Positions 1,801-32,288 of a DNA stretch of 64,000 nucleotides are shown piece after piece. The stretch comes from Mobula birostris (taxonomy: Eukaryota). The position numbers and the translations under genes were made by a program. How positions within the stretch are numbered: position 1 is the stretch's first letter; each line of letters starts with the position of its first letter. The stretch lies in contig NC_092398.1 of assembly GCF_030028105.1 (NCBI RefSeq), forward strand, positions 25,559,649-25,623,648. Reading direction: 5' to 3'. The notes beneath the pieces were generated by a model. That model saw nothing but the letters and a program-made list of their open reading frames with translations, made no database searches and was not told the DNA's origin.

Positions 1801-1923
1801 TCTGGAGTGTAGTCCATCTCGTCCTTATTGCCTATCCCACAGAATATTCTCTGTTGCTCTGGCATTTTACTCTGAATTTTTTTTTTTTGCTTTACCTTGT
1901 TCTACCTCAATGCACCATGTAAT

Positions 1924-2563
1924 TGTAAGGGGTTTCTTCTTTTCTGTTACTGCGAAGGCTCTTAAAATGGCTTCTTTGTTATGTTAGAATTAAACATGGC
2001 GTGTCTGTAATAAATACTGTGATGTAAGGATGTTCTCTCTCTCTCTCTGCTTGTTTGGGTTATATTATTGATAAGGGAGCGAACGAACCAATGGGTGTCC
2101 ATGTTAATCTTTCTGTGGGTGATATTCTGTCTCGTATGGCTGGGAACCGTATGGTTTGGCGGGCTTTTCGGGAGGCGACCCGGAGAAGAAGGACGTGCTG
2201 GAGGCGCTCTGGTCGACCACCGTGGTTGGTCCCGAGCAGCAAGTCAGGGGGGTCAGAGAGGATCGCATGGTGGAGAGAAGACCCTGTTATTTGAGCTCCA
2301 ACTTGTGTGCACAAAGAGGTTGAACTCTGATAAGTCTGGCGCCTTTTTCTTTCCCCTTTATATCGTATCTCTATTTATTTCATAGTTCCAGTAAGATTTA
2401 TAAAGAGTAACTTGTAAATTGTACATTGTGTGCTGTCTGATATTTGATGTGTGAGTTTGTACCAGGTCGCATTATACAGCAATGACGCAACTGTGAGACA
2501 CGGTTCGGCGGGCGGACGGGGTTTCTCCTGGATAAACACGAGCCGATAGACCTGAGCGTTACA
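1924..2563. mobile_element. Solo LTR (640 bp)
   Basis: TGTAAG...GTTACA termini with a 4-bp TSD TAAT at 1920-1923 and 2564-2567. Confidence 0.85.
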
Positions 2564-2724
2564 TAATGATTTGATCTGCATGAACGCTATGCAAGATGCA
2601 CTTTTTATTGTTCTTTGCTGCATGCAACAATAGTAAAACAACTTATGTATGACTTGGTACACCTCTGCAAGGTCACCCCACATTCTCACTGCACCCTTCT
2701 TACAGCACCGCCAGAAGAGACCAT

Positions 2725-3240
2725 AAGACACAGGAGTAGTTTTAGGCTTTTCGACCCATCTATTATGTTCTGCCTTTCCATCATCCCATTTTCCCTCTCT
2801 GCCCCATTCTCTAGCCTTGCCCGGTAACCTTTGACACCCTTACTAACCTAGAATCTATCAACCTCCACTTTAAAGACATCCCTTGTCTCGATCTCCACAG
2901 CTGACTGTGACAATGAATTTTACAGATTCACCACTAAAGAAATTCCTCCTCATCTCTGTTCTAAAGCTGTGCCCTCTGTTCCTAGACTCCCCCATGATAA
3001 GAAATATTCTCTCCTCATGTTCTCTGTCTAGGCCTTTCACTAACTAGTAGATTACAATGAAATTCCCCCTGATTCTTCCAAACTCCAGTGAGTACAGGCC
3101 CAGAAAATCAAACGCTCCTCATAAGTTAACTCTTGCATTCCAGGAATCATTCTCATTCACATGAACCTCCTGTAGACTCCCTCCAACGCCAGCAAATCTT
3201 TTCTCAGGTAAAGGGCCCAAAACTGCTCACAATACTCTGA
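2725..3240 (-). mobile_element. CR1 3' end fragment
   Basis: accataag tail followed by typical CR1 3' sequence; many similar copies in the window. Confidence 0.8.
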
Positions 3241-3340
3241 CCTCTTCCCATCACACCATCCTGGGTTCTGAATGCACCTTACAGGGCAAGAAATAATTCA
3301 CTTATATTTTTTCCCATCTAGTCCACAGCATTCAATATTC

Positions 3341-3383
3341 ATGCTGTGGTTTCTTCTACCAGAGGAACCAAACATAGGCTTAG
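3341..3383 (+). pseudogene. Candidate leader exon for psi-A
   Basis: ATG-MLWFLLPEEPNIGL, then a consensus phase-1 donor AG|GTGAGT. Would join in frame to 16032 as L-G, like gene B. The hydrophobic core is short, so support is weak. Confidence 0.3.
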
Positions 3384-4442
3384 GTGAGTGGCAGAATTCA
3401 GTCAGTGGGGGTGAGCTGAGACCTCCCATTCCCTACTGGAGGGAAGTCAGTGGCTTGAGTAGAAATGTCAGGGGGTGGGGGAGATGCAGCGAGGGAGACT
3501 CCCATTTCACGAGGACTAGAATATAAAAGCAACAATGTCTTGCTGAAGCTTTTTAAGGCATTGGCGAGAGTATTGTGGACACTTCTAGGCCCCTTATTGA
3601 AGAAAGGATGTGCTGGAACTAACTCTAAGCCTCTAAACTAAATCCTAAACATTACCAGAAATTTATAATATGTCAGGAGTAACATGACGACTGGAGATGA
3701 GGTAAGAGTTGGGACTAGTTCAGAGACTAGGGGCTTAGGGTTAGTAATGGGGGTTAGGGTTTTAAATTGGGGTATGGCCTTTGTCTCTCAGTCGCTCTTT
3801 TTCTGTCTTCCCCCCTGCACCATCTCCCCCATCAGCCCCCACTCTGTTTCCCCGAACCTTTCTATCTCTGCTTCTCCTCCTACCCTCCACCTGCCTCTTC
3901 TCCTTCCCTTCTCTCTCCCTCCTTCTCTCTCTCCCTCTCTCTCTTTCACCTTTCATCTTCCTCCCTCTCTGTATCTCTCTTTGTCCGTCTTTCTCTCTGT
4001 TACTGTCCACTTCCCTGTCCTTCCATGTTTCTTCCCCATGCCTTTCTGTTACTGCCCGGGACAGCTTCTAACTCATATCATAGAGTCTTGAAGAGTCAAA
4101 GAGCAGTCCAGCATGGATACAGGCCTTTCGGCTCAGCCAATCCATGTAAACCATGCTGCCCCCTCAGCTTGTCCCAGTTTCCTGAATTTGGACAATATCT
4201 CTCCAATCCTCACCATCACAATGATGCACACTAATCTAAAAACACGGTAAATATAAAACAGCATGTCTCTTTGCAACCAAATCTATGCAAATACCTCTTC
4301 AGTGATACTGTTATGTCCGCCTCAACCACTTCCTCTTGACAGGTCATTCCATCTACTTACAACCCTCTGTGTAAATAAAAACGTTGATCCTCAGGTCCCA
4401 TGTAAATGATCCTGTCTCATCCGGCCACTGACAATACAGTTC

Positions 4443-4816
4443 AACGTTTTCATATGATGTAATCTGACCTTTCCGAATCTTTTTTCTAAATTTAAATTAT
4501 ATGATGAGAGGAGCAGAGTTAACGGCATTATTGAACATGTCCGACATAAGCTGTTGGTCTAGCCCTGTTTTGTTTTTTTTCTTGGGGGGTTTTTTTCTTT
4601 TTTTTCTTTTGGGGTTTTTTTTGTTTATATATTTTTTTTTCTTTTTATTTTTTTTTAATGTTTAATTTCATTATGAGTTTGGAAGTCTTTTATATCTATG
4701 TTACTTAAAATTCATTTTATATATGCTGATGAACATTTTTCCAATCTCTTCGTACCAGCTTTGTTACTGAGTTTGTAATTTTTAAAAAATAATAAAAAGA
4801 TTTAAAAAGAAAGAAA
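4443..4816 (+). mobile_element. 5'-truncated L1/Tx1-type 3' UTR insertion
   Basis: T-rich 3' UTR with AATAAA and an A-rich tail, flanked by a 13-bp TSD GACAATACAGTTC (4430-4442, 4817-4829). Confidence 0.75.
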
Positions 4817-5149
4817 GACAATACAGTTCTGTGTTGGTTTGCCTTCCCAGAATGCATCATTTTGTGTTGTCCACAACTTTAGTGATCAGGCCTGGTGAAT
4901 TTGTGACCAACCCTGTGGCAGCCCACTAGTCACCAGCTGCCATTCCGAGACACAACCTTCAACCCCCACTCTCTGCTTCCTGCCTCCTATCATAAGACCA
5001 TAAGATATAGGAGCAGAGTAGGCCATTTGGCCCATCGCATTTTCTCCACCATTTCATCATGGCTGATCCATTTTCCTTCTCAGCCACAATCTCCAAGCTT
5101 GGTATTGTACCTCAATACATGTGAAAATTGTAAAACAACTTAAGTTTGA

Positions 5150-5985
5150 AGGTGGGACAAAGTTAAGATGGCACCAAATGGTGACTCCTTTACTTGCATC
5201 TTTGGAAACACCTTTATTTCTATCTTAAATATCTCTTTTTTTCCCCTTTTCAGGGTGTCCTATTGACCTGGAGTTACACTCTGACCAGTTCTTTGCGGGA
5301 ATGGAATCCGCTCTCAGGGCTCATGACCTGCCGGTTTTTGATATCCCAAGGACGTGTCCTGGAACACGAGCACGCTCTCAGGGTTTCGGGATTTCGTGTC
5401 TCTGGGGAAGCGCTGACTCTAGGCTAGTGCCACTCACTGAAGCGTCGTGGGAGAACACGGAACATCAGGAGCCGCAGGTTAGCTGCCAGGGGTTGTGTGT
5501 CCGGGGAGCTGCGCCTTTCTGATGCCAAGTCTCTGGGCATACAGCTCGGAAAAAGTGACGCAACAGACTTTTAACATCATAACTCAGCGAGTTGTTTGTT
5601 ATGTCTCCCCTCTCACTGTGAAACGAGGACTCCTCTTTTTCCCTTAGGAGGGAGAGAAAGAGCCTGTGGTACGTCGAATTACTGGGTGAACAAGTAGCTT
5701 TTGGCGAACTGCAAGTCTGTGTCTTTACTGATGCTTTGTTGCACGCTTGAGTGCTCAGTGGAGGGTGCTGATGCTTTTGTGCTGGTTGGGGTGGAAGGGT
5801 GTCATTGCCTTGATGCTGCTTGTGGGTGGGAGGGGGAGTTGGGGGGCACTTTGGTGTTCAAATGTTTTAACTGTCATTCATTCTTTGGGGCACTCCTCTG
5901 TTTTTGTGGATGTCTGCGAAGAAAAAGAATTTCAGGATGTATTTCGTATACATTTCTCTGACATAAAATGCACCTATTGAATGAC
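5150..5985 (+). mobile_element. Non-autonomous interspersed repeat of about 830 bp; inverted copy at about 28390-29130
   Basis: Starts aagatggcaccaaatgg. Reverse-complement match to 28390-29130. No coding capacity; family not identified. Confidence 0.7.
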
Positions 5986-7189
5986 CTTATACACCTCTAC
6001 AAGGTCGCCCCATATTCTGACCACCTCTCCTCTTACAGCACCTCCCCTTGCAACATACCATATGCCATAAGAGACCATAAGACATAAGAGAAGTGTTAGG
6101 TTATTCAGCCTATTGATTCTATTTTGCCATTCAGTCATGACTGATCTATTTTCCTTCTCTACCCCATTCTCCAGTCTTGTCCCATAACCTTTGACACCCT
6201 TTGTAACCATGAACCTATGACAAGAATCTCCCCTTGTAATATTGATCAGTGAGGCACACAGTATCTGTAATTACCGACAAGTAACCTTTATTGTCTCATC
6301 TGAAAAGCACATGGGTTCACAAACTAACTACCTGTGTGGACCCCACTAGAATCCCTGATGCCCCCCCCATGAACAGTAAATAAAAAGAAAAGATATTACC
6401 CAGGGAAAGGAGGCTACACTGCCGAGGCGTTCTTCGTGTTTCCGAGTTCCACGTGTCCGTGGGATTCTCCTTATCCGTGATGGTTGGTGTCTGGCAGCTG
6501 GAGAGTTATTGCCCCGACATATTTAGAGCTCCTGGCTCTTATAGTGTTCCGCATCAATTGAACTGGTGGATCTCCATCCCATTGACTCAAGCTCACCTGA
6601 CCTACCTGTGTCACCTTCTTATTGGTTCTAGTCCAGGGCTACAACCAACATTGTTTCATGGTTCTGCCCAGCTCACCCTTGTGTGTATGTGTCTTTCAAC
6701 TCTGACTGGTCCAAACCAGTTTAACGAGGTGACCCAGAAAGAGATTACAGGTTGCTTCTTTGGTAGGTCAGGCATTTTACATTATAAGTAGCTACTCGTC
6801 TGAGAATGGTCTCAGGTTTAGCAAGTCATTACCCGAAGCTGCTAGTGTCCACTTTCAATTGCTCTGATTAGGGTATCCAGGAGCAAGAAACAGTTCAAAG
6901 TCTACAAAATTGAGAGAACCAAAGACTGTCTGCTTCCCCTGTCCTTGATTCATCAAATCCAGTAATTGCAGATTGTAGTTTCTTCTGGCCAACATCTCCC
7001 TCCTCTTGATGCAAAAATATTTGCCAGGATCATTATCCTCCTCTCATTCAGTTGACTGCCCATAGGACTGCCATGGAACCCCCAATAGGTGTGCAATATT
7101 TACATTCTATAAATAATATTAGCAGTTACTTACTAAATTCACCCAGTTTATACTGACAATCATCTTTGATGTTTCATGAAAGCATTATC

Positions 7190-7660
7190 CTCTATTTTTT
7201 CCACTTTGTTCCATTATTTCAGCCTTCCATCTTCTCAGTTGATATACATTGAGCAATACAATTATCAGGGTACATAAAATTAGTATTACAGCACCATGTG
7301 ATACTACCCTCACCCACGGATGTACTTAAACATTTGTTCCCCAATTGCAAAACTTACACTAAAAGCCTGGGTCACTCAATATTTCATTTGCCTTACCAGC
7401 ACGTGTTTTAATTACTTTAGTGAGCTCAGTCCATTGATGGATTATCTACCTTGACTTCTCCACAACACGTGTCCAGTCTGCAATCAAGTGAGGAATTGGT
7501 GGCAGCTCACTAACAACATAAGTCCCACAGATATTCATTTGTATCAGAGCTTTGGATCCAGAAATTCTCCTTCATTACTGTGTCTCCTGCTGGCTGAGGC
7601 AAAGTTTCTTCTCCAATGGCCAGATCTAAAGTCACATTCCCTTTGGCGGCATTGTGACTT
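7190..7660 (-). pseudogene. env-like glycoprotein C-terminal remnant with TM helix
   Basis: One frame with stops: ICGTYVVSELPPIPHLIADWTRVVEKSR*IIHQWTELTKVIKTRAGKANEILSDPGF*CKFCNWGTNV*VHPWVRVVSHGAVILILCTLIIVLLNVYQLRRWK. Heptad-like region, TM helix and basic stop-transfer residues, immediately upstream of the PPT. Confidence 0.6.
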
Positions 7661-8003
7661 TCCAAAGGGCATTGCTTCCATCCCTTGGTATAACTTGTGG
7701 CCCCTGTTGCTCTATAACATTGTCTGTCCCACCAATCATATTGTAAATAGACTGATTATTCAGAGGCAAAGTAGACAATGAATAACTTTCATAAGTACTG
7801 AAACCACTATTTGTAAGCTTCTGCTTTGTAATTTCTTTTGAACAAGACCGGTGGACCTGATGGCATCTTGATAATCTATCCCTTTCCCAGTACTATCATA
7901 ATAATAGCATGTGTTGGTGGGTTAGTTAAGGATATCTTCTATTCTCATGATATTTACCAACGTTGTGAAACCTTTTCAAAGGGTAGGTTGAATTATTTCC
8001 ATG

Positions 8004-9119
8004 TCAGGGAATGTGGAATACTGCTCCGAAATAAAACCTTCCTTTAAGGCTTCTTATATGATACAATGGCACCCTTTGTCTGACCCATTCTTTTATCTGC
8101 TCATCTGAGACCCAATTAAGTACTTGATGTGCATCAAGTTGCAATAAATTAGTGCCAAGGGGTGCCAATCGTGCAGACAGTAGCACCAGCTCCCACTGGT
8201 AGGGTGTTGGTGGGAGTTCCTCGGGAAACGGTGCTTCGTAGTTATCGTAGCCGTATCGAGTAGCTTCATCTGCTAAATCATGCCAATCAATATCTCCATA
8301 TTCACCTTCCTCCCCTTTTTCAGATCCAAAAGCACATATTATTCCTCGCTGTGCAGAAAGTTGGTCCTGCAGCTTTTGAATCTGCTTTAAACTCTTTGCA
8401 TGTTCGCCAGTGTTACTCTTGCTCTCCTGTGCTGATTTCTGAATCACATTCATAGCCGTCTTTAAATCACCGCACTGTTTCCTTAATCCCTCCACTTCAT
8501 CCTTCGCTAGTTCGACTGCTTCCTCTAGTTTACTTTTTTCTTTGTAATGGCTCACACTTCAAATGAAACTGGTTCATAAGCAATTAAGCATCAACTCCAT
8601 ACCTCACTGACCCTGGAAATCAGTAACCCTTTCTCTAAAGGTTTCTATCCCCCTTTGCAGCCTTTTGTGTTCTCCTTCTAACCTAGCTCGCTGGCGTCTG
8701 CGTTATGCTGCTATTCTAGAATTTCCTGTCGTAACCTATCTCGCTGGGCTTCAGTTTTCTTCTGATATGCTAGGATTTCCTGTTGTAATCTTTCCCGCTC
8801 GGCTTCTGCCTTATGCCGACATTTGTTTTTCGTGTCTGATCTGTGCCGTTCTGCTTTGGCATTCTGTCATAATTCTATCAAATCCTCAATTAAACAGGCA
8901 AACGCTACTTTTTTTTTGCAATTGTTTAAACTTCCTGCCCGACAGCTTCCCTGGAGCAACTTTCCACAGGGCATCCCCAACAGTTTTCCCTTCACAGCCA
9001 GGGGGGCCGACTAGCACCTCATATTGCGGCCACATCTCCAACACATATTTCTGGAGGTATCCGCTCCAACCAAAACAACCCAAGATCTTCGGACTTGTAG
9101 AATTTCCTGAATTCTTCAT
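8004..9119 (-). pseudogene. gag-like remnants of the LTR element
   Basis: Two broken minus-strand ORFs (8886-9119, 8004-8555) just downstream of the PBS, including a coiled-coil-like LEEAVELAKDEVEGLRKQCGDLKTAM stretch. Assignment rests mainly on position. Confidence 0.6.
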
Positions 9120-9802
9120 CTTGGGTTAGTAACCGCTAACTACCCAGCCCCAGACCTCTCTACCTCACCCATGTGGTCCGACTCGAGTCTCCCGCTGAAT
9201 GAAGAGATTTATCCCCGAGCACCCAACAGCGGACGCCAATTCTGTTACAAGAATCATCATCCTTTGTAATAATTATCAGTGAGGCATAGAGAATTTGTAT
9301 TTACCGACAAGTAACTTTATTTGTCTTATCTAAAAAGCACGTGGTTTCACAAACTAACTATGTTTGTGCAACCTACTAGACTCCCTGCCCGCCCTCACCC
9401 CGCCCAGTTACCCGGGAAAGGAGTCTGTCCTGGCCAGGCGTTCCTCGCAGTCCCGATCTCCACGTGTCCAGAGTGTCCTTCTTATCCGCGACGGTTGGTC
9501 TCTGGTTGCTGCAGGGTCTTCACCCCTGTGTATTTTGAGCTCCTGACTCGTTGTGTTCCTCAGAAATTGAACTGGTGGATCTCCATCCCATTGGCTCAAG
9601 GTCACCTGACCTACTTAGGTCACCTTCTCACTGATCCTTATACAGAGCTACAACCAATTTTGTTTCATGGTTCTGCCCAGCTTGTGTATTTGTATCTTTG
9701 GTGCAAAGCAGTTAAATGAGGCGACCCAGACAGAGTCTAACGAGATTACAGATGGTTTCTTTGGCAGGGCTAGCACCTTACGCAAATAGCTACTTGTCTG
9801 AA

Positions 9803-11158
9803 AGAGACTTGTTCTGGATTCTCCGGCCGATGGTCAGGCCACACTTAGATCCCCTCCAGTTCGCCTACCAGCCAAGACTAGGAGTTGAGGATGCCATCGT
9901 CTACCTGCTGAACCGTGTCTACGCCCACCTGGACAAGCCAGCGAGCACTGTGAGGGTCATGTTTTTTCACTTCTCCAGTGCGTTCAACACCATCCGCCCG
10001 GCTCTGCTGGGGGAGAAGCTGACAGCGATGCAGGTGGATGCTTCCCTGGTGTCATGGATTCTTGATTACCTGGCTGGCAGACCACAGTGTGCTTGCAACA
10101 CTGTGTGTCCGACAGAGTGATCAGCAGCACTGGGGCTCCACAGGGGACTGTCTTGTCTCCCTTTCTCTTCACCATTTACACCTCGAACTTCAACTACTGC
10201 ACAGAGTCTTGTCATCTTCAGAAGTTTTCTGATGACTCTGCCATAGTTGGATGAATCAGCAAGGGAGATGAGGTTGAGTACAGGGCTACGGTAGGAAACT
10301 TTGTCACATGGTGTGAGCAGAATTAACTGCAGCTTAATGTGAAAAAGACTAATGAGCTGGTGGTACACCTGAGGAGAGCTAAGGTACCGGTGACTCCTGT
10401 TTCTATCCAGGGGGTCAGTGTGGACATGGTGGAGGATTACAAATACCTGGAGATACAAATGGACAATAAACTGGACTGGTCAAAGAACACTGAGTCTGTC
10501 TACAAGAAGGGTCAGAGCCGTCTCTATTTCCTGAGGAGACTGAGGTCCTTTAACATCTGCTGGACAATGCTGAGGATGTTCTACGAGTCTGTGGTGGCCA
10601 GTGCTATCATGTTTGCTGTTGTGTGCTGGGGCAGCAGGCTGAGGGTAGCAGACACCAACGGAATCAACAAACTCATTCGTAAGGCCAGTGATGTTGTGGG
10701 GATGAAACTGGACTCTCTCACGGTGGTGTCTGAAAAGAGGATGCTGTCTAAGTTGCTGCCATCTTGGACAATGTCTCCCATCCACTACATAATGTACTGG
10801 GTGGGCACAGGAGTACATTCAGCCAGAGACTCATTCCTCCGAGATGCAGCACAGAGCATCATAGGAAGTCATTCCTGCCTGTGGCCATCAAACTTTACAA
10901 CGCCTCCCTTGGAGGGTCAGATAGGCTGGTCCTGGACATTTCATAATTTACTGGTATAATTTACATATTACTATTTAACTATTTATTACTATTTTCTATT
11001 ACCATTCTATTACTATTTATTATTTCTATGACTATTACTATTACTATTTACTAATTGTAATATTACTATTACTATTTGTATTACTATTTATTATTTATGG
11101 TGCAACGGTAACGAAAACCAATTTCCCCCGGGATCAATAAAGTATGACTATGACTATG
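9803..11158 (+). mobile_element. Rex1/Babar LINE, 5'-truncated RT fragment nested in the 5' LTR
   Basis: LDPLQFAYQPRLGVEDA and FSSAFNTI RT motifs; 3' end gatcaataaag followed by a (tatgac)n tail. Splits LTR sequence that is contiguous in the other LTR. Confidence 0.9.
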
Positions 11159-11321
11159 AAATGGTCTCAGGTTTAACGTCATTACCTGAAGCTTCTTTGT
11201 GTCAACATTCAATTACTCTGATTAGATTATCCCAGAGCAATAATCAGTTCAGAGTCCACAAAATGGAGCGGGAGGGGAAACAGAGATAATTAGTTTGTCT
11301 GCTTCCCCGTTTTGATACGTC

Positions 11322-11414
11322 TGTAATGTACCCCTAGGGTTCATATTTTCTGAGGACTGTCACTTTAAAATGTCGGGAGAATGAGACTGACTTTTGGACA
11401 CTGTTTGAGCTGCT

Positions 11415-11458
<44 letters not shown>

Positions 11459-12620
11459 TTATTTGATGGACAATCGATGTTATGGTTTCTCTGCAGCTTG
11501 TTTTGAATATACAAGGACACACAGACACACACAGTTAGAGTGAAGATGGATTAGGTCGATGGAAGACACCAGTGAGTTGGTCGCTGGTTTAAACTTTTAG
11601 TAGCCCAAAACGGGTGAGTTGAGATCGATTCTGAGTATTGACAAATGACTCTCACAAGTTTTCTGCAACTAGGCCAAGTTTGCAGGAAGAGAAGAGAGGA
11701 GAGATAGGTTTGAAACAGAAGAAACCTAGAGACAAAGAGATCACTGTTTGGACTCTCTCTCCAAGTAGCCCGTGAAGGTGAGTTGGTTTCTATTCAACTG
11801 CAAAAGTGTGATTGTCACTTAGTTAATCCACAGGAGTGGGTTCTCTGGTGAGGGGAAAACCTTTGTGAACACCACGTGTGTGTTTACCCTTTTGTCTGGG
11901 TGTGGTAGTTCACTGAAGAACTACCCTGTGGCAAATCACTGTTGCAGTTATTTCGTATGTCGCGGAACTGGTAAGTGGCTATCATGTTGTGTGTTTGGGG
12001 TAACCTTGTGGAACCTACCGGTGTGTCGACCCTTTGCCTGGGTGGTGGTTCCCTTGAAGAAGGGCCCCTTTGTGATAAGCTACTATTGGTGATAATCCAT
12101 ACGTGGATTCTGTTGGAGTATCCTGTGGCCACCACTTTGAGATGTCCCATAGCTGAATTCGGGCATGGTACCACTTGTGTTAAAAGGATATTTGTTGAAG
12201 ATCACTGTCGGTGAAATTTTGTGTGTGGAGTGGAACAACTTCGGAGATAAAACCTATTACTATTGTTATTTTGTATTGCTGTCATGGAATCTGTGGAATA
12301 TCGATGTAATTGCCTTCTCACAACATCCGCCTTTGAATTACAAACATCTCGCATTAATTAGCCCGTGCATCACGAACTGAATTTACTTCGCTTACATACC
12401 ATCGTAAGACTGTATCAATTACCACCTAAGCTTGAAGAAGTTTAGGTTCTGTATTTCCACACCTATATATGCATAAACTGTGCTAACCTGTTCGATTTAT
12501 CTGATTTTATGTTACTTTATTACGTAGTTACTAATAAAATAGAATTAGTTAACAGCAAAACCAGACTCCAGGTGTGTTCCATTTCTGCTGGTTCTTTAAC
12601 CCATTACGGGGTACATAACA
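11322..12620. mobile_element. Solo LTR (about 1.3 kb) nested in the 5' LTR
   Basis: Inverted termini TGTAATGTACCCC...GGGGTACATAACA; 4-bp TSD CGTC/CATC (11318-11321, 12621-12624); internal (GA)n. Confidence 0.85.
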
Positions 12621-13934
12621 CATCAATCCACTGACTGCATAACATAGTTTCTTCTGGCCAGTAGTATATTTCTCCCAATTACGTTACCCTACACCCTATA
12701 ACTCAGGTTCTCAAATCTCATCAACGTATTGTAATCTTTTTCTGTACACTTTTAATCTTATTGATATTCTTCCTTAGGTGAGTGATAAAAACTACACAAT
12801 ACTCCAAATTAGGCCTCACCTACGTCTTACACAATTTCAATGTAATATCCCAAACTCCTGTACTCAGTCCATTGATTTATGAATGTCAATGCACCAAAAG
12901 CTCCCTTCACAACCCTATCTACCTGTGACACCTCCTTAAAGGAATTATTCACATTTAAACTCATCAGGGCTCACTTTATTCACGGGAATAATTATTTCAT
13001 TATCATTCATACGTTAAAAATAAAATTGCGCAGGCAGGGGTGTTAAAAGACAACATCCAACAGCCTAGAAAATCAGCCAGTCTGGCACATCATTAGGATT
13101 TTGCAGCATTGTAGCATAGCAGTTAGCAAAATGCCATTAAAGCGCCAGCAATCACCAATCGGAGATCAATTCCTGCTGCTGTCTGTAAGGAGTTTGTACT
13201 TTCTCCCCATGACGGTGTGTGTTTCCTCCAGGAGCTCCCGTTTCCTCCCACGTACAGTTAGGGTTAGCAAGCTGTGGGCAGGCTAACCTGGTGCCAGAAG
13301 CATGGTGACACTCGCAGCCTGCCCTTGGCACAATCTTCACTGATTGATTCGATGCAAACATCGCATTTCACTGTCTGTGTCAAGGTACATGTGACAATAA
13401 AGCCAATCTTCACCTTAATCTTTAAGAAGACAGATAGATTTCTGCAAGTAGAAGTCATCGAAGAGTGTGAGGAAAGAACAAAAGCATCATGTTTTGATGG
13501 GATTAGACATTATCGTAATGAATGAGGCAAAATACTTGAGGTGTAAGTGAAATAACACAGAGATACTGGAAATCTTGGGCAATTCCAATCAGGTATCTGC
13601 AGTGTTTTTTTTCCTGAGTTTCACAGACCTCAAAAGCCAACCACCTGTTCCAGCTTATATGAAGAGGGTTACCTTCAAGATGGGCCAATATGCACTGACC
13701 CCCTGAATCTGCCCGGGTCTGTGGATTCACGTGGGCAGGAGGCATGAGGACAGGTGATCCCTTTGGTGCACGAGTTGGCGAGGCTGGAGTTGAAGGTCCT
13801 TTCACTGGCAGGTCCTGGGGTCAATAACAAATATCGAAGCCTGAAGGTCAAACGGAAGTCTGGAGGTTGATATCGCCAAGATCATCGGAGGTTGGATGCT
13901 CAAAGGTGGACTGTCCTGGCGTTGGAGGACCATC

Positions 13935-13937
13935 TGT

Positions 13938-14018
<81 letters not shown>
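13935..14018. repeat. (TG)n microsatellite
   Basis: Near-perfect TG dinucleotide run. Confidence 0.98.
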
Positions 14019-14020
<2 letters not shown>

Positions 14021-16031
14021 TGGGTGGTCGGGAGGAATGAAGTCTGCTTTGTTGTCGTTGATTTATTGCTGTTCTGTTGTTGTTTTGTTGCTCGTATTGT
14101 TCTGATAAACATTATGTTGGCGCCAGAATGTGTGGCGACCTTAAGTTATGTTGGTTGTTAATGCAAACGACATATTCCTCTGTATGCTTGCTTTCAATAT
14201 ACGTGTGACAAATTAATCTTTATCGTTACCTTTAAGAAGAAAGATAGATTTCTGGATGTAGAAATTATCAAAGTGAGTAAAGAAAGAGAAAGAATATGTT
14301 GAGATCAGAGTATCAGTTCCCAATTATATTGAATGCAGCAAAAGGCTTGAAGTATTGAAATAGGCAAGTGAAAAAACACGGAATAGATTTAGTGGCTATC
14401 CACTTGATATCATCTTGTAGACCTCCATGAAGTCATCTCTTGCCTTCCTTCGCTCCAAAGAGAAAAGCCTGAGCTCGCTTAATCTTTTCTAAGACATGCT
14501 CACCAATCCAGGCAGAATCCTGGTAAATCACCTCTGCACCCTCTCTAAAGCTTCCATGTCCTTCCTATGAGGTAACCAAAACTGAACACACTACTCCAAA
14601 TGGGGTCAAACCAGAATTTAATTGAGCTGCAACATTACCTCCTCACTCTTGAATTGAATTCCCTGACTAATTGAAGGCAAGTACACCATACCCTTTCTTA
14701 AAGCGTAACAGTGGAAATGTGAGCAGTTTCCAGTTCTTGGGTGTTAACACCTCTGAAGATCTAATCTAGGTTCAACATATTGATGCAATTACAAAGAAGT
14801 CTCAATGGCGGCTGTATTTCATTGGGAGTTGGAAGAAAATTGGTATGTCACTACGGACTCATGCAGATTTCTATAGATGTGCTATGGGGAGCATTCAAAC
14901 TGGTTGCATCGCAGTTTGGTATGGCAAGGCCGTGACACAGGATCAGAAAACTCTGTAGAAAGTTGTAAACTCAGCCAGCGGCATCATGGGCACTAGCCTC
15001 CTCAACATCCAGGACATCTTCAAAAGGCGATACGTCAGGCAGGTAGCATTCATCACAAAGGACCCCATCACCTAGGACATGTCTTCTCTTTGCTACCATC
15101 AAGGAGGAGGTATGGGAGCCTGAGGAGGCACATTCAATGTTTCAGGGACAGAATCTTCCCATCGTCCATCAGATTTCTGAATGGACAATGAACCCATGAA
15201 CACCACCTCAGAATTTTTCCCTCTCTTTTTGCACTACGAATTTAATTTTATATGTCCTTCTTATTGTAATTCATAGTTTTATATGTCAACAAGACAACAA
15301 ATCAACAATTTACATGACATAAAAGGCATCCGTTAGTCTTACGAGACCATGGATCTGCACTTGGAAGGTCTTCACTCTCCAGGGCACAGTCCTGGGCAAG
15401 GTTGTATGGAAAACCGGCAGTTGCCCATGCTGCAAGACTCCCCTCTCTACGACACCAATGTTGTCCGAGGGAAGGGCACTAGAATCCATACAGCTTGGCA
15501 CCAGTGTCGTCGCAGAGCAATGTGTAATTAAGTGCCTTGCTCAAGGACACAACACATGCTACCTCGGCTGGGGCTCAAACTCACGACCTTCAGGTCACTA
15601 ATCCAATGCCTTAACTACTTGGCCACATTACGTATGCCAGTGGTATTAAACCTGATCTGATAACTTGTCCTATCAATCTTTGAGCGATCTATGGATGTGA
15701 GCCCCAAGATCCCTTTGCTTCTCCCCACTATTCATTAGAGGCATGCCTAGTTCTGGTCTACAGCACTACAGCTGGGGTGGCTTCTGTTCCGGTAAACTTT
15801 GTTGTATCCAATACTCTCAGCCATTTCTGATAGTCACGCGGTCAACGTAAGTGTGGTCTAACAAGTGTGTTGTCTAACATGGGAGCAAAGGGATTGAAAT
15901 TGTAACTTATGGTCAGATGGAACCTGCAACTCAGAAGACAGAAATCACCATGTTTCATGCAATTCATTCGCAACACACCCTACCCTTGAGACGACTCTTC
16001 AACTATCCTTCTTCTCAATTGTGTTCATCAG

Positions 16032-16269
16032 GGAAGACAGTCGACTCCAACACAGCTCTGTGGTTCTCAGAAACAGGCCTGCGATTTGGTTACGATGGCA
16101 AAGACGACACCTGTTTTGATTTCTCTGTCAGGAAATCTGTGGCCAGTATTCCACTGTTGGAAGACTTTATCAGTGGTCTGAGCCACCACAAACCCTGTCT
16201 TTGAAGTCAACCGTACCAAGGAAGTTCTGATCCTGAATGCCAAGCTGTCTACATCATAACATCATGGAA
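16032..16269 (+). pseudogene. psi-A membrane-distal domain exon (paralog of gene B exon 2), disrupted
   Basis: Acceptor ttctcaattgtgttcatcag|, phase 1. Encodes GKTVDSNTALWFSETGLRFGYDGKDDTCFDFSVRKSVASIPLLEDFISGLSHHKP, which aligns by eye with gene B LQFAYNSEVAVRFDYATGKIVAINPLVKSFVDDL. TGA at 16202-16204; a frameshift and a second stop are needed to reach a weak donor near 16270, so the 3' end is uncertain. Confidence 0.7.
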
Positions 16270-16955
16270 GTTATGTTGAACTTGGAACAGAGCCAACTCG
16301 ACAAATGCAAGGCAAATTGCTGACAACAGCGCCCCCACCAGTTTCTTTACAAAACTACATTTATTATAAATTCAAACCACTGCAGTGTTCTGATACACTG
16401 CATTACAAACAAAAACCAGGCAAATCATGTCTAACACAGATTAAGCTAACACATTCCTATCCTCAGTGAGGATAACATTTAGCTCCTCCCCCCCCCCCCA
16501 CCAAAGGAATCCCCCTGTCCCTCAAACATTGCCAGGTAATCAGCTCAGTCAGAACCCTCCACTACCCACCTCCAAAACACACAGGTAATTATCTTACCCA
16601 GCTACCAGGAGCAGGTTAACTAGGACATCCTCCTTTCTCCCTGACCCTCTGTACTGGATAACCAAGGATGAAAATGGTGTGGCTAACAGTGTCCCCACCT
16701 TCTGTGCATTGACACAATAAGGTCAGTCAGCATAGGAGCAGGCCCTGTGGCCCATCATGACTATGCTGTCCATCAGAGTCACACAGCTCGGGAACAGGCC
16801 TTGTTCCTGTCAGTAACCTTATGTACATGTAATGCCCTGGTTAGTATTTTTTTTACTGTTATGCTGTTCTGTATCTCATTTTATGCTGTTCTGTGCAAGC
16901 TGCTTGTTTTCAGCTTATGTTTGGGTTATTGTTGAAGATAAGAGATAGGAGAATT

Positions 16956-17690
16956 GCGTGCTATCCAATTATGGGCAATTACGGGTAATGTGAGATCGCT
17001 GGGAAATAAAATGGATGAGTTGACAGCACTATCCAGGAGTCAGAGAACATTTTGGGAGTGCGGTGTTATGTGTTTTACTGAAACGTGGCTGCACGAGGAC
17101 ATACCTGACCAAAACGTTTCCATAAAGGGCTTCCAGACCGTTTGGGCTGACTGGAAGTGCACTGAGAGCAGTAAGCGTAAAGGAGGGGGGCTTGCTGTGC
17201 TGGTTAACGACAGATGGTGCAGTCCGGGTCATATTACGATCAAGGAACGTGTTTGTAGCCCGGATATTGAACTTTTTGCTGTTAGACTCAGGCCATATTA
17301 TTTGCCAAGGGAAATCTCACATTCAATTGTGGTTGCTGTGTACATCCTCCCTCTGCCAACCCGAGATCGGTGTGTAACATCATTTATACCGTTAGGCACA
17401 GGAGTACATTCAGCTAGAAACTCATTCCACCGGGATGTAGCACTGTCATGGAAAGTAATTCCTGCCTGTGGCCATCAAACTTTGCAGCTCCTCCCTTGGA
17501 GGGTCAGACACCCTGGGTCAATGGGCTGGTCCTGGACTTATTTCCATCTGGCATGGTTTACATATTATTATTTGAATGTTTGTGGTTTTGTATTGCTATG
17601 TTTGTACTCTGTCCTTGGTTGGTGCAACTGTAACGAAACCTAATTTCCCTTGGGATCAATAAAAGATGTCTATCTATCTATCTATCTATT
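16956..17690 (+). mobile_element. Internally deleted Rex1/Babar element inserted in an LTR (about 16828-18150)
   Basis: APE motifs NVRSLGNKMDEL and CFTETWL joined to the same C-terminal/3' sequence seen at about 10800-11150; (tcta)n tail. The flanks resemble the LTR at 1924-2563. Confidence 0.8.
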
Positions 17691-20214
17691 AGGATGGTTG
17701 GATTAAGGGAGGTTTCTCTGGTGAGGGACACTAAGGCTGGGCTTGGGGATCTTGTCAGAGAGAGATGAAGAGAGAAGACGCAGGAGAGAAGAGGTTGTAG
17801 GGTTCGACCCAGAGCAAGACCATGATTCGACAAAACCTGGGGTGATCGATGGAGGATCACCGATGGGGAAACGGTGAGCTCCAACTTGTGCACATTAGAC
17901 TTTTTCACAAAAATGGGCCCTTTTCTTTTTTTTTGTTCTTTCTTTACTAACCCTTTAGTCAAGTTAGGAATTGTAAAGCTAAATCTTTTAACTGTATGCA
18001 TTGTATTGTCTGTAATTTCATGCACTCATTTGTAACCGGGTAACGAATTACTCACAAACAGGAGGCTTCGGGCTGGGCTCGTGACTTAGTCTCACACGTT
18101 TGGCGGGGCCGGAGATTGCCTTCCCTGGACTGACAAAGCCGAGGATAACAGAATCCTGTACCTACTGTCACTTTGTGTACGTAGAATCAGTCCCTGTGTA
18201 TAAGCTAATCTTGAGTATATGTGGCTGCACTCAAACTCTCACTTGTACATTCTGTTTTATAGAATTGCTTTTATATTTACTGGTCTTTTTATTGTATTGT
18301 TTTGTGCTGCGTTGGACTGGAAGTAACAATCATTTTCTTTTCCTTTACGCTTGTGTACTGAAGAATGATAATAAATAATATTCGATCTTGAACTGAATTA
18401 ATCTGAGCGAGTAGCCTAACGAAGGTACAGTACATGTCATCCATGCAGATCATTCCATTACAACTGTGCATTGAGGTAGTACGAGGATAAAACAATGATA
18501 GAATACAGAACAAAGAGATACAGTTTCAGAGTGTAAGTAGGTAGACAATAAGATGTAAGGCCATGGAGAGGCACACGGTGTGATCCAGAGCCCATCTTGT
18601 CTCACTAGGGAATGATTCAATAGTCTTCAAACAGCAGGACAGAAACCTGCATTTGGTCCATGTCCCTCTGAACCAGAGGTTCTCAACATTGTTTTATGCC
18701 ACGGACCCCGACCATTAACAGAGCATCTGAGAACCCCAGGAAGGGAACCACTGCTCTAAACCTTTCCTATCCATGTGGGAATGCTACGAAGGCTTCAAAA
18801 GCATGGCTAGGCCTGCAGCGCAATCCTCAGTCTGTGATCATCGTTCACACAAAGTGTTGCTCTGGATTTCCAGCATCCGCAGAAGCTCTTGTGTTTGTGA
18901 TTCGATATGTGTTTCGATGTACATGTGACAAGTGAGGCTAATCTATAGATCATTTAATCTTTAATGGCCCAAAGGCCTTTTAAATGTCATAACTATATCT
19001 GCCTCAAATATTCCTCTGCCAGCTCATTCCCAATAACTACATGACTTCATGTGGAACAAGTTTCCCCTCAGGTCCTTTATAAGTCTTTCTTTCTCACTCT
19101 CTCACTTCTACCCAACCTGGAGAAAAAGATTGTATTCACCTTCTCTATGTCCCTTATGACTTCACAGAACATTACAGCACAGTCAGACCCTTTGGTGCAC
19201 AATGTTGTGCAGACCTTTAAACCTACTCCTAGATCAATCTACCTCTACACTCCCACATAGACCTCCATTTTCCTATCATTCATGTACCTATTTAAGAGTT
19301 TCTTAAAAGCCCCTAATGTATCTGCCTCCACCACTACCCCAGTAGTGCATTCCACACACCCACCACTCCGTGTAAAAACTTATCTCTGACATCTCCCCCC
19401 ACCCCCATACTTCCCATCAATCACCTTAAAATTATGCCCTCTTGTATTAGGCATTTCAGCCTTGGGAAAGAGTTTCTGGCTACCTACTTGATCTATGCCT
19501 CTTATCATTTTACACCTCTATGAAGTCAACTTTCATCTTATTTGCTCCAAAGAGAAAATCCCTAGCTTGCTCAAACTGTCCTCATAAGACATGCCCTCTA
19601 GAACAGACAACATCCTGATAAATCTCATCTGCATCCTCTCTAAAGTGTCGATGTCCTTCCTATAATGAAGCAAACATGGCTGAACACAATATTCCAAGAG
19701 TGGTCTTATAAACCTCAAAAGTTTATAAGGTCACCTTTCAAACTCCTACAATTGAGAAGGCAAAGACCCAGCCTATCCAGCTTCTTATAATCTCTTGTCT
19801 TGGTAACATCCTGTTTGCAACTTATTCATTTAATAAAATTCTTCCTACAGGAGAGTGACCAGAACTGTACATTGATTCAAGAATCAAGTGCATTTATTAT
19901 CAAAGAATGTAAAAATTAAACAACATTGAGATTTGTTTGCTCACAGGTGGCCACAAAGCAAGGAACCTGAAATAACCTTATTAAAGAAAAAACAACATTC
20001 ACTGTGCAAGAGAAAGCAAAAAGAAGTCATGCAGACAACAGCATTCCAAACCAAAAATGATCCTTAGATCCGAACCCTGGAGCAGCCCAAAGCCTGGCTT
20101 ATCAGTTTATCATGTTAGCAGGCATGGAGCACAGAAGCTGGGGCAGTCTTCATAGCCTCAGCACTATGGAGGTGACCTTACCAATATGCTATAACGTGAT
20201 ATTCCCTCTCCTGT

Positions 20215-20527
20215 ACTGAGCATTCTCAGTAATACTGAGGCACTGCATCGGAATGGAAGTGCGTCCCTTTAGAACAGAGCCGAGGAGGAATTTCTTCAGC
20301 CAGAGGGTGGTGAATTTGTGAAATTCATTGTCACAAACAGCCGTGGAGGTCAAGTCATTGGGTATATTTAAAGTGGAGGTTGTTAGTTCTTGATTAGTAA
20401 TGGCATCAAAGGTTCCGGGAAGAAGACAGGAGAATGGAGTTGAGAGGGATAATGAATCAGCCATGATGGAAAGGCAGAGCAGACTCGATGGGCCGAATGA
20501 CCTAATTCTGCTCCTGTGTCTTATGGT
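20215..20527 (+). mobile_element. CR1 3' end abutting the psi-A Ig exon acceptor
   Basis: CR1 terminal sequence (agaacagagccgaggaggaatttcttcagcc...ctcctgtgtcttatgg) ends about 16 nt before the AG at 20541-20542. Confidence 0.8.
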
Positions 20528-20542
20528 TTCTCTCCACTGCAG

Positions 20543-20815
20543 TGAAACGTTCCATCACCATAACGTTAACACAGCTGAACGTGGGAGTAAAGCCCTTAGT
20601 CCTGATGTACAGAGTGGATGGAATTTACCCAACGGACGTCAACACAGCATGGCTGCGGAATGGCGAAGCCATCAAGCAGAAGGTGTTCAGGAGCAGCATT
20701 TTGCCAAACTGACACATTCCAACTCAGACTTCATGTCAGCGTTGACCCCAGCAGGGGAGCACCTACACTTCTCAACTGGAGCACAGGGGTGTCCTGGAGA
20801 GATGTGCAGTTTGGG
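20543..20815 (+). pseudogene. psi-A Ig C1 exon (paralog of gene B exon 3), disrupted
   Basis: Acceptor tttctctccactgcag| and donor gtttggg|gtaagg nearly identical to those of gene B exon 3. Encodes VKRSITITLTQLNVGVKPLVLMYRVDGIYPTDVNTAWLRNGEAIKQKVFRSSILPN*, then TFQLRLHVSVDPSRG, then TYTSQLEHRGVLERCAVW. 5-bp and 1-bp deletions, a TGA stop, both Ig cysteines lost (TAC, TCT). Roughly 40-45% amino-acid identity to gene B by hand count. Confidence 0.9.
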
Positions 20816-21999
20816 GTAAGGTCCAGAGTCTGCACCGATCACAATTACTGTACGCACTGCTCTGGTGTTCATGGAACTACAAATTATTTTCATCCTGCAG
20901 CTCAAAACTCTTTCCAAAACCGTGGCGATGATCTTCAGACACATGACAGTTGGGACGAGCACTTGTGGTTATCTGCATTGTCCGGTGTCAGATCCCAGGC
21001 AGAACAGTTGCCGAACCAAGTCATAATACATCCACGTAACATGGTGCATCGATAAAACTTGGAGAGGGTACAAAGGGGGCAGACAAATTTCTTTATCCTC
21101 CAGACCACGTGGAAGAGATGGTGCATTTTCTTAGCTGCGGCGTGGAGCAGAACTTATTGATAATGTTCACTATTAAAAATTTTCAGCTCTCCACCCCGGC
21201 ACCAGTGCTGTAAATAGGAGTGCGTGCGCCGCTCCCTTCCAGAAGTCAAGGACCAGCTCTTTCGTTCTCCCGACAGTCGGGGAGAGGTTGTTAGCGCGGA
21301 TCCGTGCCCCTGGGCTCTCTCTTTCTTTCCTCCACTTCCTCTCATTAGTATCTGAGATCCAGCCCGCCACAGTGGTCTCATCTGCAAACTTGTGGGTGGG
21401 GTTCGACCAGAATCCGGCCAGGAGGTCGTGAGTCGACAGGGAGAAGCGGATTAACAATGCACCTTGTGGAATTCCAGTGAGGACACCTACCTCATCTCTG
21501 GTCTCTTACACCACCTAGTGTTCAGTGGCAGCACCTCTTAAAATTATCACCCATAATACAGTACCTGTGTCCCTCTGGTCCTTTCTGATGCTAGTTACCT
21601 ATTTGTTCACGTATTCAACTATTACCTTGAGGTTTCCGTAATACACAGAATTTGGCCATTCAGTCTATCGAATCCGCACCACCATTTCATCAAGGTTAAT
21701 TTATTTTTCCAATCAACCCCATTCTCCTGCTTTCTCCCCATACCTTTGACGCCCTTACTAAACAAGAACCTATCAACCTCTCTTTAATTATACCCAAAGA
21801 TTTGGCCTTCACTGCCGTCTGTGGCAATGAATTCCATCTCTGGATAAAGAAATTTCTCCTCATTTCTGTCTAAAGGCTGTACCCTTTGGACCTAGACCTC
21901 TCACTATTGGTAGCATCCTCTCTACATTCACTGTATTTTAGGTTTCAATGAGATCTACACTCATTCTTCTAAACTCCAGCAAGTACAGACTCAGAGCCA

Positions 22000-22420
22000 T
22001 TTGTTAACCGTTTCATTCCCAGGATCATTCTCGTGAACCTCCTCTGGAGCCTATCTAATACCGTCACATCCTTTCTGAGCTAAGGGTCCGAAAACTGCTC
22101 ACAATACTCCAAATGTGGTCTGGCCAGTGCCTTATAAATCCTCAGCATTTCATCCTTGCTTTTATCGTCAAGCCCTCTTGAAATGAATGTCAATATTGTA
22201 TTTGCCTTCCTTAGTAATGACTCAACCTGCAAGTTAATCTTCGGGAAATCTTGCATGAGGACTACCAAGTGCTTTTGCACCTCTGTTTTCTGAATTTTCT
22301 CCCCATTTATAAAACAGCCAACACCTTTATTCCTTCTACCAAAGTGCAAGAGCATACATATCCCTACATTGTATTCCACCTGCCACTTCTTTGCCTATTC
22401 TCCTAATCTGTCCAAAGCAC
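22000..22420 (-). mobile_element. CR1 RT fragment
   Basis: ORF with LHFGRRNK and ALARPHLEYCEQF. Confidence 0.85.
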
Positions 22421-22839
22421 CGTTTCATGTTAGCTGCACGGGTGCACAGCCGTGGTGTAACTGAAATGCTCCCACACACATAGCCTTCGTTGCCACGCAG
22501 CTGGAAGAAAAACAGACAAGAAAAGGTTTATGAAGCATGAAAGATTTTCTTTTTTGTATTCTATCTCATTATACACTTCAGTTTATAAATAAAATCAAAA
22601 GTATGTGATCTTTCAATTTTCATCCTAGATATTCAATAGTATTCATACTAAAGAAAAAGATAACATTCAAAGTACCACACAGTTTTCAGGCCATGTAAAA
22701 AATTCCTGCTCAGAACAACTGTTGGTCTATGCAGCTTTAAAAAAAGATAAAGGGAACATTGGTCCAAGGCCTTTTGCAGCTCCAGAAGTTGAAACAGTAT
22801 GTTTCAATATCACATTTTCTTTAATAATAAATAATTTCT

Positions 22840-30529: not shown

Positions 30530-30900
30530 AAGTTGAAACAAAAGGGGTTCCCTCCCGCCTCGCCCCGCCTGTCTGTGGCAGCGGCCGCCCGCTCAGCCGG
30601 GGAAACTTCTACATCGATCGCCTCCCGTTACGGGACCTGCCGGCTGGCGATCGGTTTCGCGCGTAGCCGCTGTGTGACAAGGTCCTCAGCCTTCGGCGGA
30701 AGGGATGTGGGGAACGTTGCCGTCTCCGCGAACCGTGAGCCAGCTGCTCCTCCCGCTGTCTCAGGAGCCGCCGGCCGGCGTGAGGCGACGCCGCTCTCCC
30801 TCTCTGCTCGCCGCCTTCCTCCTCCTCCTCCTCAACGGCTCCACTGCCCTGGGTGAGGAGCGCAGCGCCCCAGGGATGGGAGGCGCCGGGGGAGGGGGCA
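30530..30900. promoter_or_regulatory. CpG island promoter of gene B
   Basis: The most conspicuous CpG-dense segment of the window. GC boxes (ccccgcct, ctcccgcct) and a kB-like GGGGTTCCCT near 30544, directly upstream of the leader ATG. Confidence 0.75.
30705..30852 (+). CDS. Gene B exon 1: leader/signal peptide of an MHC class II-architecture (W-category beta-like) gene
   Basis: ATG at 30705 inside a CpG island. Encodes MWGTLPSPRTVSQLLLPLSQEPPAGVRRRRSPSLLAAFLLLLLNGSTAL (basic n-region, hydrophobic core LLAAFLLLLL, small-residue c-region). Phase-1 donor G|GTGAGG at 30853, in frame with the exon at 32031. Confidence 0.8.
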
Positions 30901-32030: not shown

Positions 32031-32288
32031 GAATGCACATCGGTCAAGTGACTTTCTCTGGTAAAGGTTCGGAGTTCTCAATGGCTACCCTGCAGTTTGC
32101 TTACAATAGCGAAGTAGCTGTTCGCTTTGATTATGCTACAGGAAAGATTGTGGCCATCAATCCACTTGTGAAGTCTTTCGTGGACGATCTGAACTGCAAT
32201 CGAAAGGTTATCAGAAATGTTGCCCGCTATGTTAATGACATGCCTGTTGCCATGGAGATTGTTCACCAGGCTGTTCAAGCTCTGACGG
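32031..32288 (+). CDS. Gene B exon 2: MHC membrane-distal (beta1/alpha2-like) domain
   Basis: Acceptor ttatttgcttgccag|, 258 bp, phase 1-1, donor G|GTAAGT. Encodes GMHIGQVTFSGKGSEFSMATLQFAYNSEVAVRFDYATGKIVAINPLVKSFVDDLNCNRKVIRNVARYVNDMPVAMEIVHQAVQALT. The FAYNxxxxVRFD strand pattern followed by a helical region matches the MHC groove-domain layout. Confidence 0.85.

Follow-up and report, generated by a model that had tools for sequence, protein, structure and literature searches.

The window, the whole 64,000-nucleotide stretch of Mobula birostris (giant manta ray) DNA that was analysed, contains an MHC-type gene, termed gene B, together with the remains of a paralog, termed psi-A, of which only the beta1 and beta2 exons survive (Table 1). 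Gene B is WB_DS1-like; its beta1 exon matches the Pfam model MHC_II_beta and its Ig exon matches C1-set. The layout of psi-A is likewise that of a class II-type beta chain, with a single beta1 exon and, after it on the same strand, a single C1-set Ig exon. A preliminary description had presented psi-A as a pseudogene paralog of gene B with the same exon order and strand, conserved splice flanks around the Ig exon, frameshifts, stops, and loss of both Ig cysteines. Each of these points stands: both exons lie where they were described, are homologous to those of gene B and carry lesions, exon order and strand agree, the Ig-exon splice flanks TCCACTGCAG and CAGTTTGGGGTAAGG are common to both genes, and the frameshifts, stops and missing cysteines are evident from the sequence and from the alignment of paralogs.

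Table 1. Features of psi-A in the window (positions are those of the window).
Feature	Position	Strand	Evidence or occurrence
psi-A, two exon relics	16032-16239 and 20542-20815	+	both upstream of gene B
beta1 (groove) exon relic, subtype A1	16032..16239	+	WB beta1 profile, protein match, open frame
Premature TGA, groove relic	16202..16204	+	common to 5/5 A1 copies in the genome
Former intron between the relics, now mostly high-copy repeats	16240..20541	+	contig depth, matches within the window
beta2 (C1-set Ig) exon relic	20542..20815	+	DNA and protein similarity to gene B and WB chains
First Ig cysteine changed to Tyr (TAC)	20608..20610	+	4/4 A-type Ig relics, the older 28.761-Mb copy among them
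In-frame TGA (20710-20712) directly after LPN, and 5-bp deletion with frameshift at 20715/20716	20710..20716	+	three young copies
1-bp deletion in a G run, first reading frame regained	20754..20757	+	window and 25.378-Mb copies; absent at 28.690 Mb
Second Ig cysteine changed to Ser (TCT)	20770..20772	+	4/4 A-type Ig relics

The groove relic begins behind an acceptor AG at 16030-16031, which is rated good, and remains open for 56 codons in the intron phase of gene B, until its premature TGA. Among 2169 six-frame fragments of the window, a profile built from 10 WB beta1 domains, none of them from the psi-A lineage, retrieved gene B at E 2.6e-33 and the groove relic at E 8.6e-6, while the next unrelated fragment reached only 0.52, a gap that rules out a chance match. 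The top protein match of the relic is a WB chain of Heptranchias (P0156, 44% over 36 aa), and a Pfam search of the relic returned no match, MHC_II_beta included. Its identity to the gene B beta1 exon is 35% over 40 residues (E 9e-5). The groove similarity to gene B is as weak as had been described, but it is no sign of special decay, since the beta1 domain of gene B is itself only ~35% identical to shark WB_DS1 beta1 and such low identity is normal for the family. Relative to an older subtype, A2, the relic has deletions of 12 bp (16034/16035), 5 bp (16194/16195) and 35 bp (16218/16219), and its donor GT has become CC at 16240-16241, which abolishes the site. It is the 5-bp deletion that brings the TGA into frame. 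All three deletions recur in each of the five A1 copies, every one of which lacks the 52 bp and the donor. WB beta1 domains possess class I alpha2-like interface residues, namely A32, G35 and D37 (PMC8713811). By our own mapping of that numbering, G35 and D37 are present in the groove relic and A32 is Gly, as the relic reads G-Y-D-G-K-D where shark WB has A-Y-D-G-x-x; this class I-like YDGKD motif is better kept in psi-A than in gene B.

The Ig relic lies between an acceptor AG (20540-20541) and a donor GT (20816-20817) and matches the Ig exon of gene B (46199-46478) with 67% DNA identity over 316 bp (E 1e-19). The protein identity of about 40-45% counted by hand in the preliminary description is reproduced, with 45% over the first 55 residues and ~40% across the whole domain against B-type proteins. 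In Pfam, the first half of the relic scores 19 bits against C1-set, below the cut-off of 21. Its top protein matches are all W-category beta chains (13/13 of the top blastx matches are WB), led by Heptranchias P0156 with 48.5% over 101 aa. In WB beta2 domains P57 is present and Trp61, an invariant residue of class II beta2, is absent (PMC8713811). The Ig relic has P57, within an LPN motif that extends up to 20709, and position 61 falls inside the 5-bp deletion of this copy; in the older 28.761-Mb copy and in gene B it is Arg. A second in-frame TGA (20743-20745) precedes the 1-bp deletion. The 28.761-Mb copy retains the 5 bases, and has its own 28-bp deletion and a change of the acceptor from AG to GG. 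With respect to the features of a functional chain, psi-A has thus lost the cysteine pair, the reading frames of both exons and the groove donor.

The remaining parts of the gene are missing from the window. No leader, membrane-anchor or tail exon of psi-A was found there by tblastn, and the best hit of an anchor-region profile had an E of 3; the same anchor queries do find the anchor exon of a paralog at C34:25387465 (25.387 Mb). The former intron is heavily invaded. Summed contig depth in public runs is ~20 over the exons versus 1e3 to 1e6 over most of 16240-20541, and many pieces of this interval match elsewhere in the window. One repeat copy (20262-20531), whose end lies 10 bp upstream of the Ig acceptor, occurs in 4/4 A-type Ig copies. 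Neither the 229-aa repeat ORF (16954-17640) nor the ORF at 20400-20816 had a Pfam match.

The family to which psi-A belongs is clear from several comparisons. Both exons find their best matches among WB proteins of sharks and rays, and a tree of Ig domains unites the A copies in a clade (100/99) inside the WB group (83/87), apart from the same genome's exons of classes I and II; a second Ig-domain tree did not resolve the backbone. A profile search for relatives yielded 13 proteins, two of them pigeon proteins resembling CD1 and the others chiefly WB chains of sharks, and a fragment from the little skate used as query matched only itself and Heptranchias. The representative protein search covered the best 150 of 375 strong matches, crowded by multi-Ig proteins, and for this reason an A-type ortholog could have escaped notice. 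The W-category to which WB chains belong was described by Okamura et al. (2021, PNAS, PMC8713811) and has been proposed as an MHC group linking class I and class II. With the WB_DS1-like group of that study, psi-A shares the class II-type layout, the class I alpha2-like YDGKD of beta1 and the LPN (P57) of beta2; its best matches are the WB_DS1-like chains of Heptranchias, Heterodontus, Cetorhinus and Leucoraja, and the paralog next to it forms a pair with a WA_DS10-like gene, as WB_DS1L does in the great white shark. Unlike the members of this group, psi-A has no Ig cysteines, leader, anchor or tail, and it bears frameshifts, stops and deletions; moreover, it forms a clade of its own, ~40-48% identical to any intact WB. 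Gene B and the B-type paralogs (e.g., M. hypostoma P0003) agree with psi-A in strand, exon order, Ig splice flanks and family, whereas their Ig exons are open with both cysteines, and the identity of psi-A to them in the Ig exon amounts to 63.5-65.3% for DNA and ~40% for protein, and in beta1 to 35%. Taken as a whole, psi-A is very probably an unprocessed pseudogene, dead for a long time, that derives from a W-category MHC beta chain (WB, DS1-like), and presumably no protein is made from it.

Psi-A does not stand alone. The same chromosome has Ig exons of the B type (at least 7) as well as Ig relics (at least 4) and beta1 relics (at least 10) of the A type, and a unit consisting of a dead A and a B is repeated about five times. 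Protein searches of the whole assembly found no intact A-type copy; the 4 Ig and 10 beta1 relics each have stops, frameshifts or deletions. Psi-A belongs to a separate WB lineage, represented in Mobula birostris by no fewer than 10 beta1 relics and 4 Ig relics. The order beta1 then Ig is found again at 25.374/25.378 Mb and 28.701/28.690 Mb, and this recurrence of the exon pair in paralogous copies excludes an origin of the two exons from unrelated loci. The window copy itself is located within a segmental duplication of ~33 kb whose counterpart, at a distance of 202 kb, matches it with 97.6-99.6% identity, and a 19.4-kb tract of 99.6% identity is contained within the 97.6% duplication. Of the small multigene cluster proposed earlier, the multigene nature is upheld and the small size is not, given the numbers above. 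Similarly, psi-A is a paralog of gene B, yet not a private, one-off local copy in tandem with it, as it was already broken when the A-plus-B unit multiplied.

A residual role for the relic is unlikely. Under this reading, psi-A would be dead as a protein gene and still be active, either as non-coding or read-through RNA or as a gene-conversion donor for the B-type genes. Of the words sampled from the Ig relic, 13% and 5% occur in two runs that are guessed to be RNA and come from a related organism; the relic may therefore be transcribed in that organism, whereas the RNA-labelled runs of Mobula birostris itself contain none of these words. A banded houndshark cDNA that joins WA_DS10 to the Ig exon of a possible pseudogene, WB_DS1_n2 (PMC8713811 supplement), also speaks for such a role. 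As for conversion, the 19.4-kb tract does indicate conversion or very recent copying in the region; however, A and B show no stretch of raised similarity apart from motifs also conserved in the skate, and the relics diverge between species as their flanks do.

The lesions of psi-A are not assembly slips: they recur in paralogs along this chromosome, and none of the differences listed for public contigs is an indel that would correct them. Public contigs from the same species and three related organisms span both exons at ~95% identity, and no indel at either frameshift site is among the differences listed for the contigs of these four organisms; the contigs of one organism have an extra T inserted after 20735. 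These public runs were available as Logan contigs, which drop rare variants, and the differences were listed in part, so the read-level proof for the window copy is indirect. That psi-A is a working gene, with frameshifts and stops that are merely assembly errors, is highly improbable. A 1-bp deletion in a G run, such as the one at 20754-20757, would be a typical slip of long-read assembly, but the 5-bp deletion and the stop occur at 25.378 and 28.690 Mb as well, the two cysteine losses are substitutions rather than indels in all four copies, the groove lesions are common to every A1 copy, and leader and anchor exons are absent. Neither way in which the preliminary description could have failed, namely lesions that vanish in reads or exons that are unrelated, was encountered. 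It is next to inconceivable that psi-A is instead the WA alpha-chain partner of gene B and no beta-chain paralog at all, for while W-category alpha and beta genes do adjoin as pairs (PMC8713811), the Ig relic has WB-type GIYP and LPN motifs and best matches that are all WB, a true WA alpha2 exon of this genome (C34:25410828-25411055, minus strand) looks markedly different (LSFGKDWRFQ, with the hallmark Trp), and the window holds no further C1-set exon.

By tree path, the closest sequence from a ray other than Mobula is a WB_DS1-like gene of the little skate (P0118; JAMYXN010001503.1, locus L047). Its contig starts inside the Ig exon, and the skate comparison accordingly covers that exon. From the region of the first cysteine to LPN, psi-A and the skate chain are ~69% identical in amino acids by hand count; in the skate, unlike in psi-A, the exon has an uninterrupted frame and both cysteines, and an anchor exon follows. 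The DNA identities of the Ig exons are 63.5-65.3% for A and B, 68.6% for A and skate, and 64-67% for B and skate. The three are thus approximately equidistant (64-69%), which implies that the split between A and B is very old. Together with a dS between A and B of about 0.6-0.8, this agrees with the old duplication that had been suggested. In tree tests, the groupings A+B, A+skate and B+skate were each not rejected, with an AU p of 0.49 for the skate placed with A against 0.53 with B. No sign of constraint on the psi-A relics was observed: their divergence from the contigs of other organisms is 3.8-5.5% versus 4.3-7.2% for flanking and intron pieces, and dN/dS between the window copy and the 28.761-Mb copy is 0.49, a value which cannot show neutrality because it derives from only nine differences. 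The second deletion in the Ig relic regains the frame in the window copy, which has a one-in-three likelihood by chance and was counted against the pseudogene explanation, as was the possible transcription of the Ig relic in a related organism.

Based upon these data, the following course of decay may be proposed. Psi-A would derive from an old split within the WB_DS1-like genes of rays, roughly as deep as the divergence of manta and skate. The Ig disulfide was probably lost first, with frameshifts, deletions and repeat insertions following; thereafter, the dead psi-A would have been carried along passively with each segmental duplication of its B-type neighbour. It is also possible, albeit doubtful, that the ancestral WB_DS1 of rays, intact in the little skate, survives among mobulids as the remnant psi-A, and that the amplified B-type is a divergent paralog that took over. 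If so, mantas would have swapped one W-category beta lineage for another, with the dead original beside each new copy.

Psi-A is a real but ordinary pseudogene of a kind already known, the WB family having been published in 2021, and it leaves the understanding of how this family works unchanged. Its interest lies in the fact that the W-category is little known in rays. Psi-A shows that the WB_DS1-like genes of rays comprise two or more lineages of old origin, of which one is wholly extinct in the giant manta (14 exon relics, 0 intact copies), and that the locus grew through successive segmental duplications in which the dead gene was carried along. This is of use for the annotation of elasmobranch MHC regions and for trees built upon them, in which psi-A-type exons should not be counted as genes. 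A parallel may exist in the banded houndshark, whose possible pseudogene WB_DS1_n2 (PMC8713811 supplement) would represent an independent event in another species: it too is the second of two DS1-type loci, its neighbour being expressed, and it does not seem to yield a normal message.

Psi-A is a real but unremarkable unprocessed pseudogene that belongs to an already published family, the W-category MHC described by Okamura et al. 2021 (PMC8713811). Its Ig relic retains 67% DNA identity across 316 bp to the Ig exon of the neighboring WB_DS1-like gene B (E 1e-19) and 45% amino-acid identity over the first 55 residues, with both acceptor and donor flanks kept relative to that gene. The homologous reading starts in the third frame, shifts to the first, and then returns to the third: a TGA at 20710-20712, located after the LPN motif, is directly followed by a 5-bp deletion at 20715/20716, and the frame is restored where the G run at 20754-20757 has lost 1 bp. 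The two cysteine codons now read TAC (20608-20610) and TCT (20770-20772). The groove (beta1) relic begins behind a good acceptor, shares the intron phase of gene B beta1, and is open for 56 codons until a TGA at 16202-16204, while its donor has been lost (GT to CC at 16240-16241). It exhibits 35% identity to gene B beta1 across 40 residues (E 9e-5, search within the window). Run against 2169 six-frame window fragments, a profile of ten WB beta1 domains, with the psi-A lineage left out, gave the groove relic an E of 8.6e-6, compared to 2.6e-33 for gene B and 0.52 for the best unrelated fragment. The preliminary description of psi-A was thus fully correct with regard to its exon order and strand, Ig splice flanks, frameshifts, stops, and loss of both cysteines, as well as the closer resemblance of the Ig exon than the groove exon to gene B.

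Features of the psi-A and gene B region and their relatives on C34, the contig carrying the window (C34:25559649-25623648)
Feature	Position	Strand	Remark
psi-A groove (beta1) relic	window 16032-16239	+	
psi-A Ig relic	window 20542-20815	+	
A-type Ig relics (n=4)	25.378, 25.580, 28.690, 28.761 Mb		99%, window copy, 97%, 80%
Segmental duplication, ~33 kb	window 1-22745 plus C34:25549184-25559648		partner C34:25347171-25380278, ~202 kb away
Gene B leader	window 30705-30854	+	recognizable exon
Gene B beta1 exon	window ~32031-32288	+	Pfam MHC_II_beta, E 1.5e-6
Gene B C1-set Ig exon	window 46199-46478	+	E 6e-17

When the whole assembly was searched for A- and B-type exons, every match was located on C34. 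Besides the four A-type Ig relics, there are ten A-type beta1 relics (five young A1, 95-100% identical; three older A2, 75-82%; two more decayed) and seven B-type Ig exons, all with open frames and both cysteines, which bears out the earlier suggestion of a multigene cluster. A-beta1, A-Ig, and B follow one another in this order on a single strand at 25.374/25.378/25.385, 25.576/25.580/25.606, and 28.701/28.690/28.670 Mb, as do A-beta1 and B at 28.828/28.847 and 29.069/29.050 Mb, where an A-type Ig relic is undetectable. Both cysteine losses are common to all four A-type Ig relics, and the 5-bp deletion and TGA to the three young ones; the 28.761-Mb relic differs, having a 28-bp deletion and an acceptor changed from AG to GG. 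Similarly, deletions of 12, 5, and 35 bp occur in every one of the five A1 groove relics, together with the TGA and loss of the donor. Each of the three A2 relics has the same frameshift toward the 3' end, and in two of them CGA has become a TGA stop. Since these lesions are shared and no intact A-type exon was found in the whole assembly, the A-type gene was evidently dead before the A-plus-B unit was amplified. Disulfide loss would have come first, ahead of the frameshifts found in the young copies. For the banded houndshark, a second WB_DS1 locus has already been described as a possible pseudogene (PMC8713811 supplement); one modest new point is that the manta has lost an entire WB lineage, whose remains persist as passengers next to every amplified B-type gene.

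These same lesions common to the paralogs provide a stronger argument against assembly error than does contig coverage. Logan contigs, which omit rare variants, cover both relics in one same-species run and three other organisms (~95% identical to the window). Among the differences from the window that were listed, which are part of the total, the sole indel in the Ig relic is a T that one organism has inserted after 20735, an additional lesion and not a repair. Assembly error is therefore excluded as far as the analysis allows. Contig divergence is 3.8-5.5% over the relics vs 4.3-7.2% over flanking and intron pieces, so no constraint is seen. The window copy reads A at 20680 and G at 20683, and the same-species run only G and A, the state of the 25.378- and 28.690-Mb paralogs; the variant seen in the window could belong to this copy alone, or the contig builder could have discarded it.

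W-category beta chains account for all of the top protein matches to the Ig relic, led by a Heptranchias perlo WB protein (P0156, 48.5% over 101 aa), with B-type proteins ranking behind (37-41%); the groove relic best matches P0156 and Heterodontus P0152 (43-44%). A tree of Ig domains unites the A copies in one clade (100/99) nested in the WB group (83/87), separate from the DS3-type clade as well as from the exons for class I alpha3 and class II beta2 in the same genome. Around the first cysteine, psi-A is closely similar to the Ig exon of the little skate WB_DS1-like gene (PMC8713811 supplement alignment and skate contig L047). Over the whole Ig exon, A and B are 63.5-65.3% identical in DNA, A and skate 68.6%, and B and skate 64-67%; AU tests leave A+B and A+skate unseparated (p 0.53 vs 0.49), and dS between A and B is ~0.6-0.8. 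Taken together, these sequence comparisons support the old duplication proposed previously and make the A/B split very old, roughly matching the manta-skate divergence in depth. A second modest new point is that the extinct lineage may correspond to the WB_DS1-like gene that skate retains.

Downstream of the 25.385-Mb B-type gene, in tail-to-tail orientation, is an open WA_DS10-like alpha2 exon (L046; C34:25410828-25411055, minus strand) with the hallmark L55/F57/W61 motif (LSFGKDWRFQ). This fits the WA_DS10L/WB_DS1L pairing reported in the great white shark (PMC8713811 supplement). WB_DS1-like and WA_DS5-like are also tail-to-tail on L047, whereas W-category pairs in sharks and teleosts are reported to be head-to-head (PMC8713811).

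Psi-A itself resides within the segmental duplication, as judged from identity blocks on both sides. Window 1-19398, which contains the groove relic, is 99.6% identical to C34:25357633-25377026. Identity is 97.6% both for window 19493-22745 against the sequence next after C34:25377026 and for the 10.5 kb farther left; rightward of 22745, the gene B part is 81-91% identical to the paralogous stretch. The 19.4-kb core may have undergone recent gene conversion, may have been copied again very recently, or may have been duplicated in error by the assembly.

Other WB-like sequence was not found in the window (tblastn, 18 WB proteins), nor was a connecting-peptide/transmembrane region by queries or profile (best E 3); the same queries and profile do recover the anchor exon of a paralog (C34:25387465-25387566). 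No further C1-set exon was found in the window and hence no WA gene there. The former psi-A intron is mostly high-copy repeats, and the GC-rich island seen at the gene B leader is absent upstream of psi-A. None of the sampled words of the Ig relic is present in RNA-labelled runs of the manta itself. Two small runs (X11 and X25) from a related organism, classed as RNA by a guess, contain 13% and 5% of the words sampled from window 20535-20900; the relic may be transcribed in a sister species.

As for gene B, the M. birostris protein P0001 (XP_072102720.1) is 98% identical to its Ig exon. A membrane-anchor exon of gene B was not found in window 46479-64000 by profile search (best E 3), and homology to the paralog ends at ~48382, slightly before the expected anchor-exon position. 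In the 25.385-Mb B-type paralog, the cytoplasmic-tail exon (C34:25404478-25404564), 17 kb downstream of the anchor exon, has an in-frame stop (EEID*LPR). Within the repeat-filled intron of gene B, 126 aa on the minus strand (window 38662-39030) match the start of P0094, a long multi-Ig protein (43% identity, E 1e-21), and are probably a transposon-borne piece included in the P0094 gene model.
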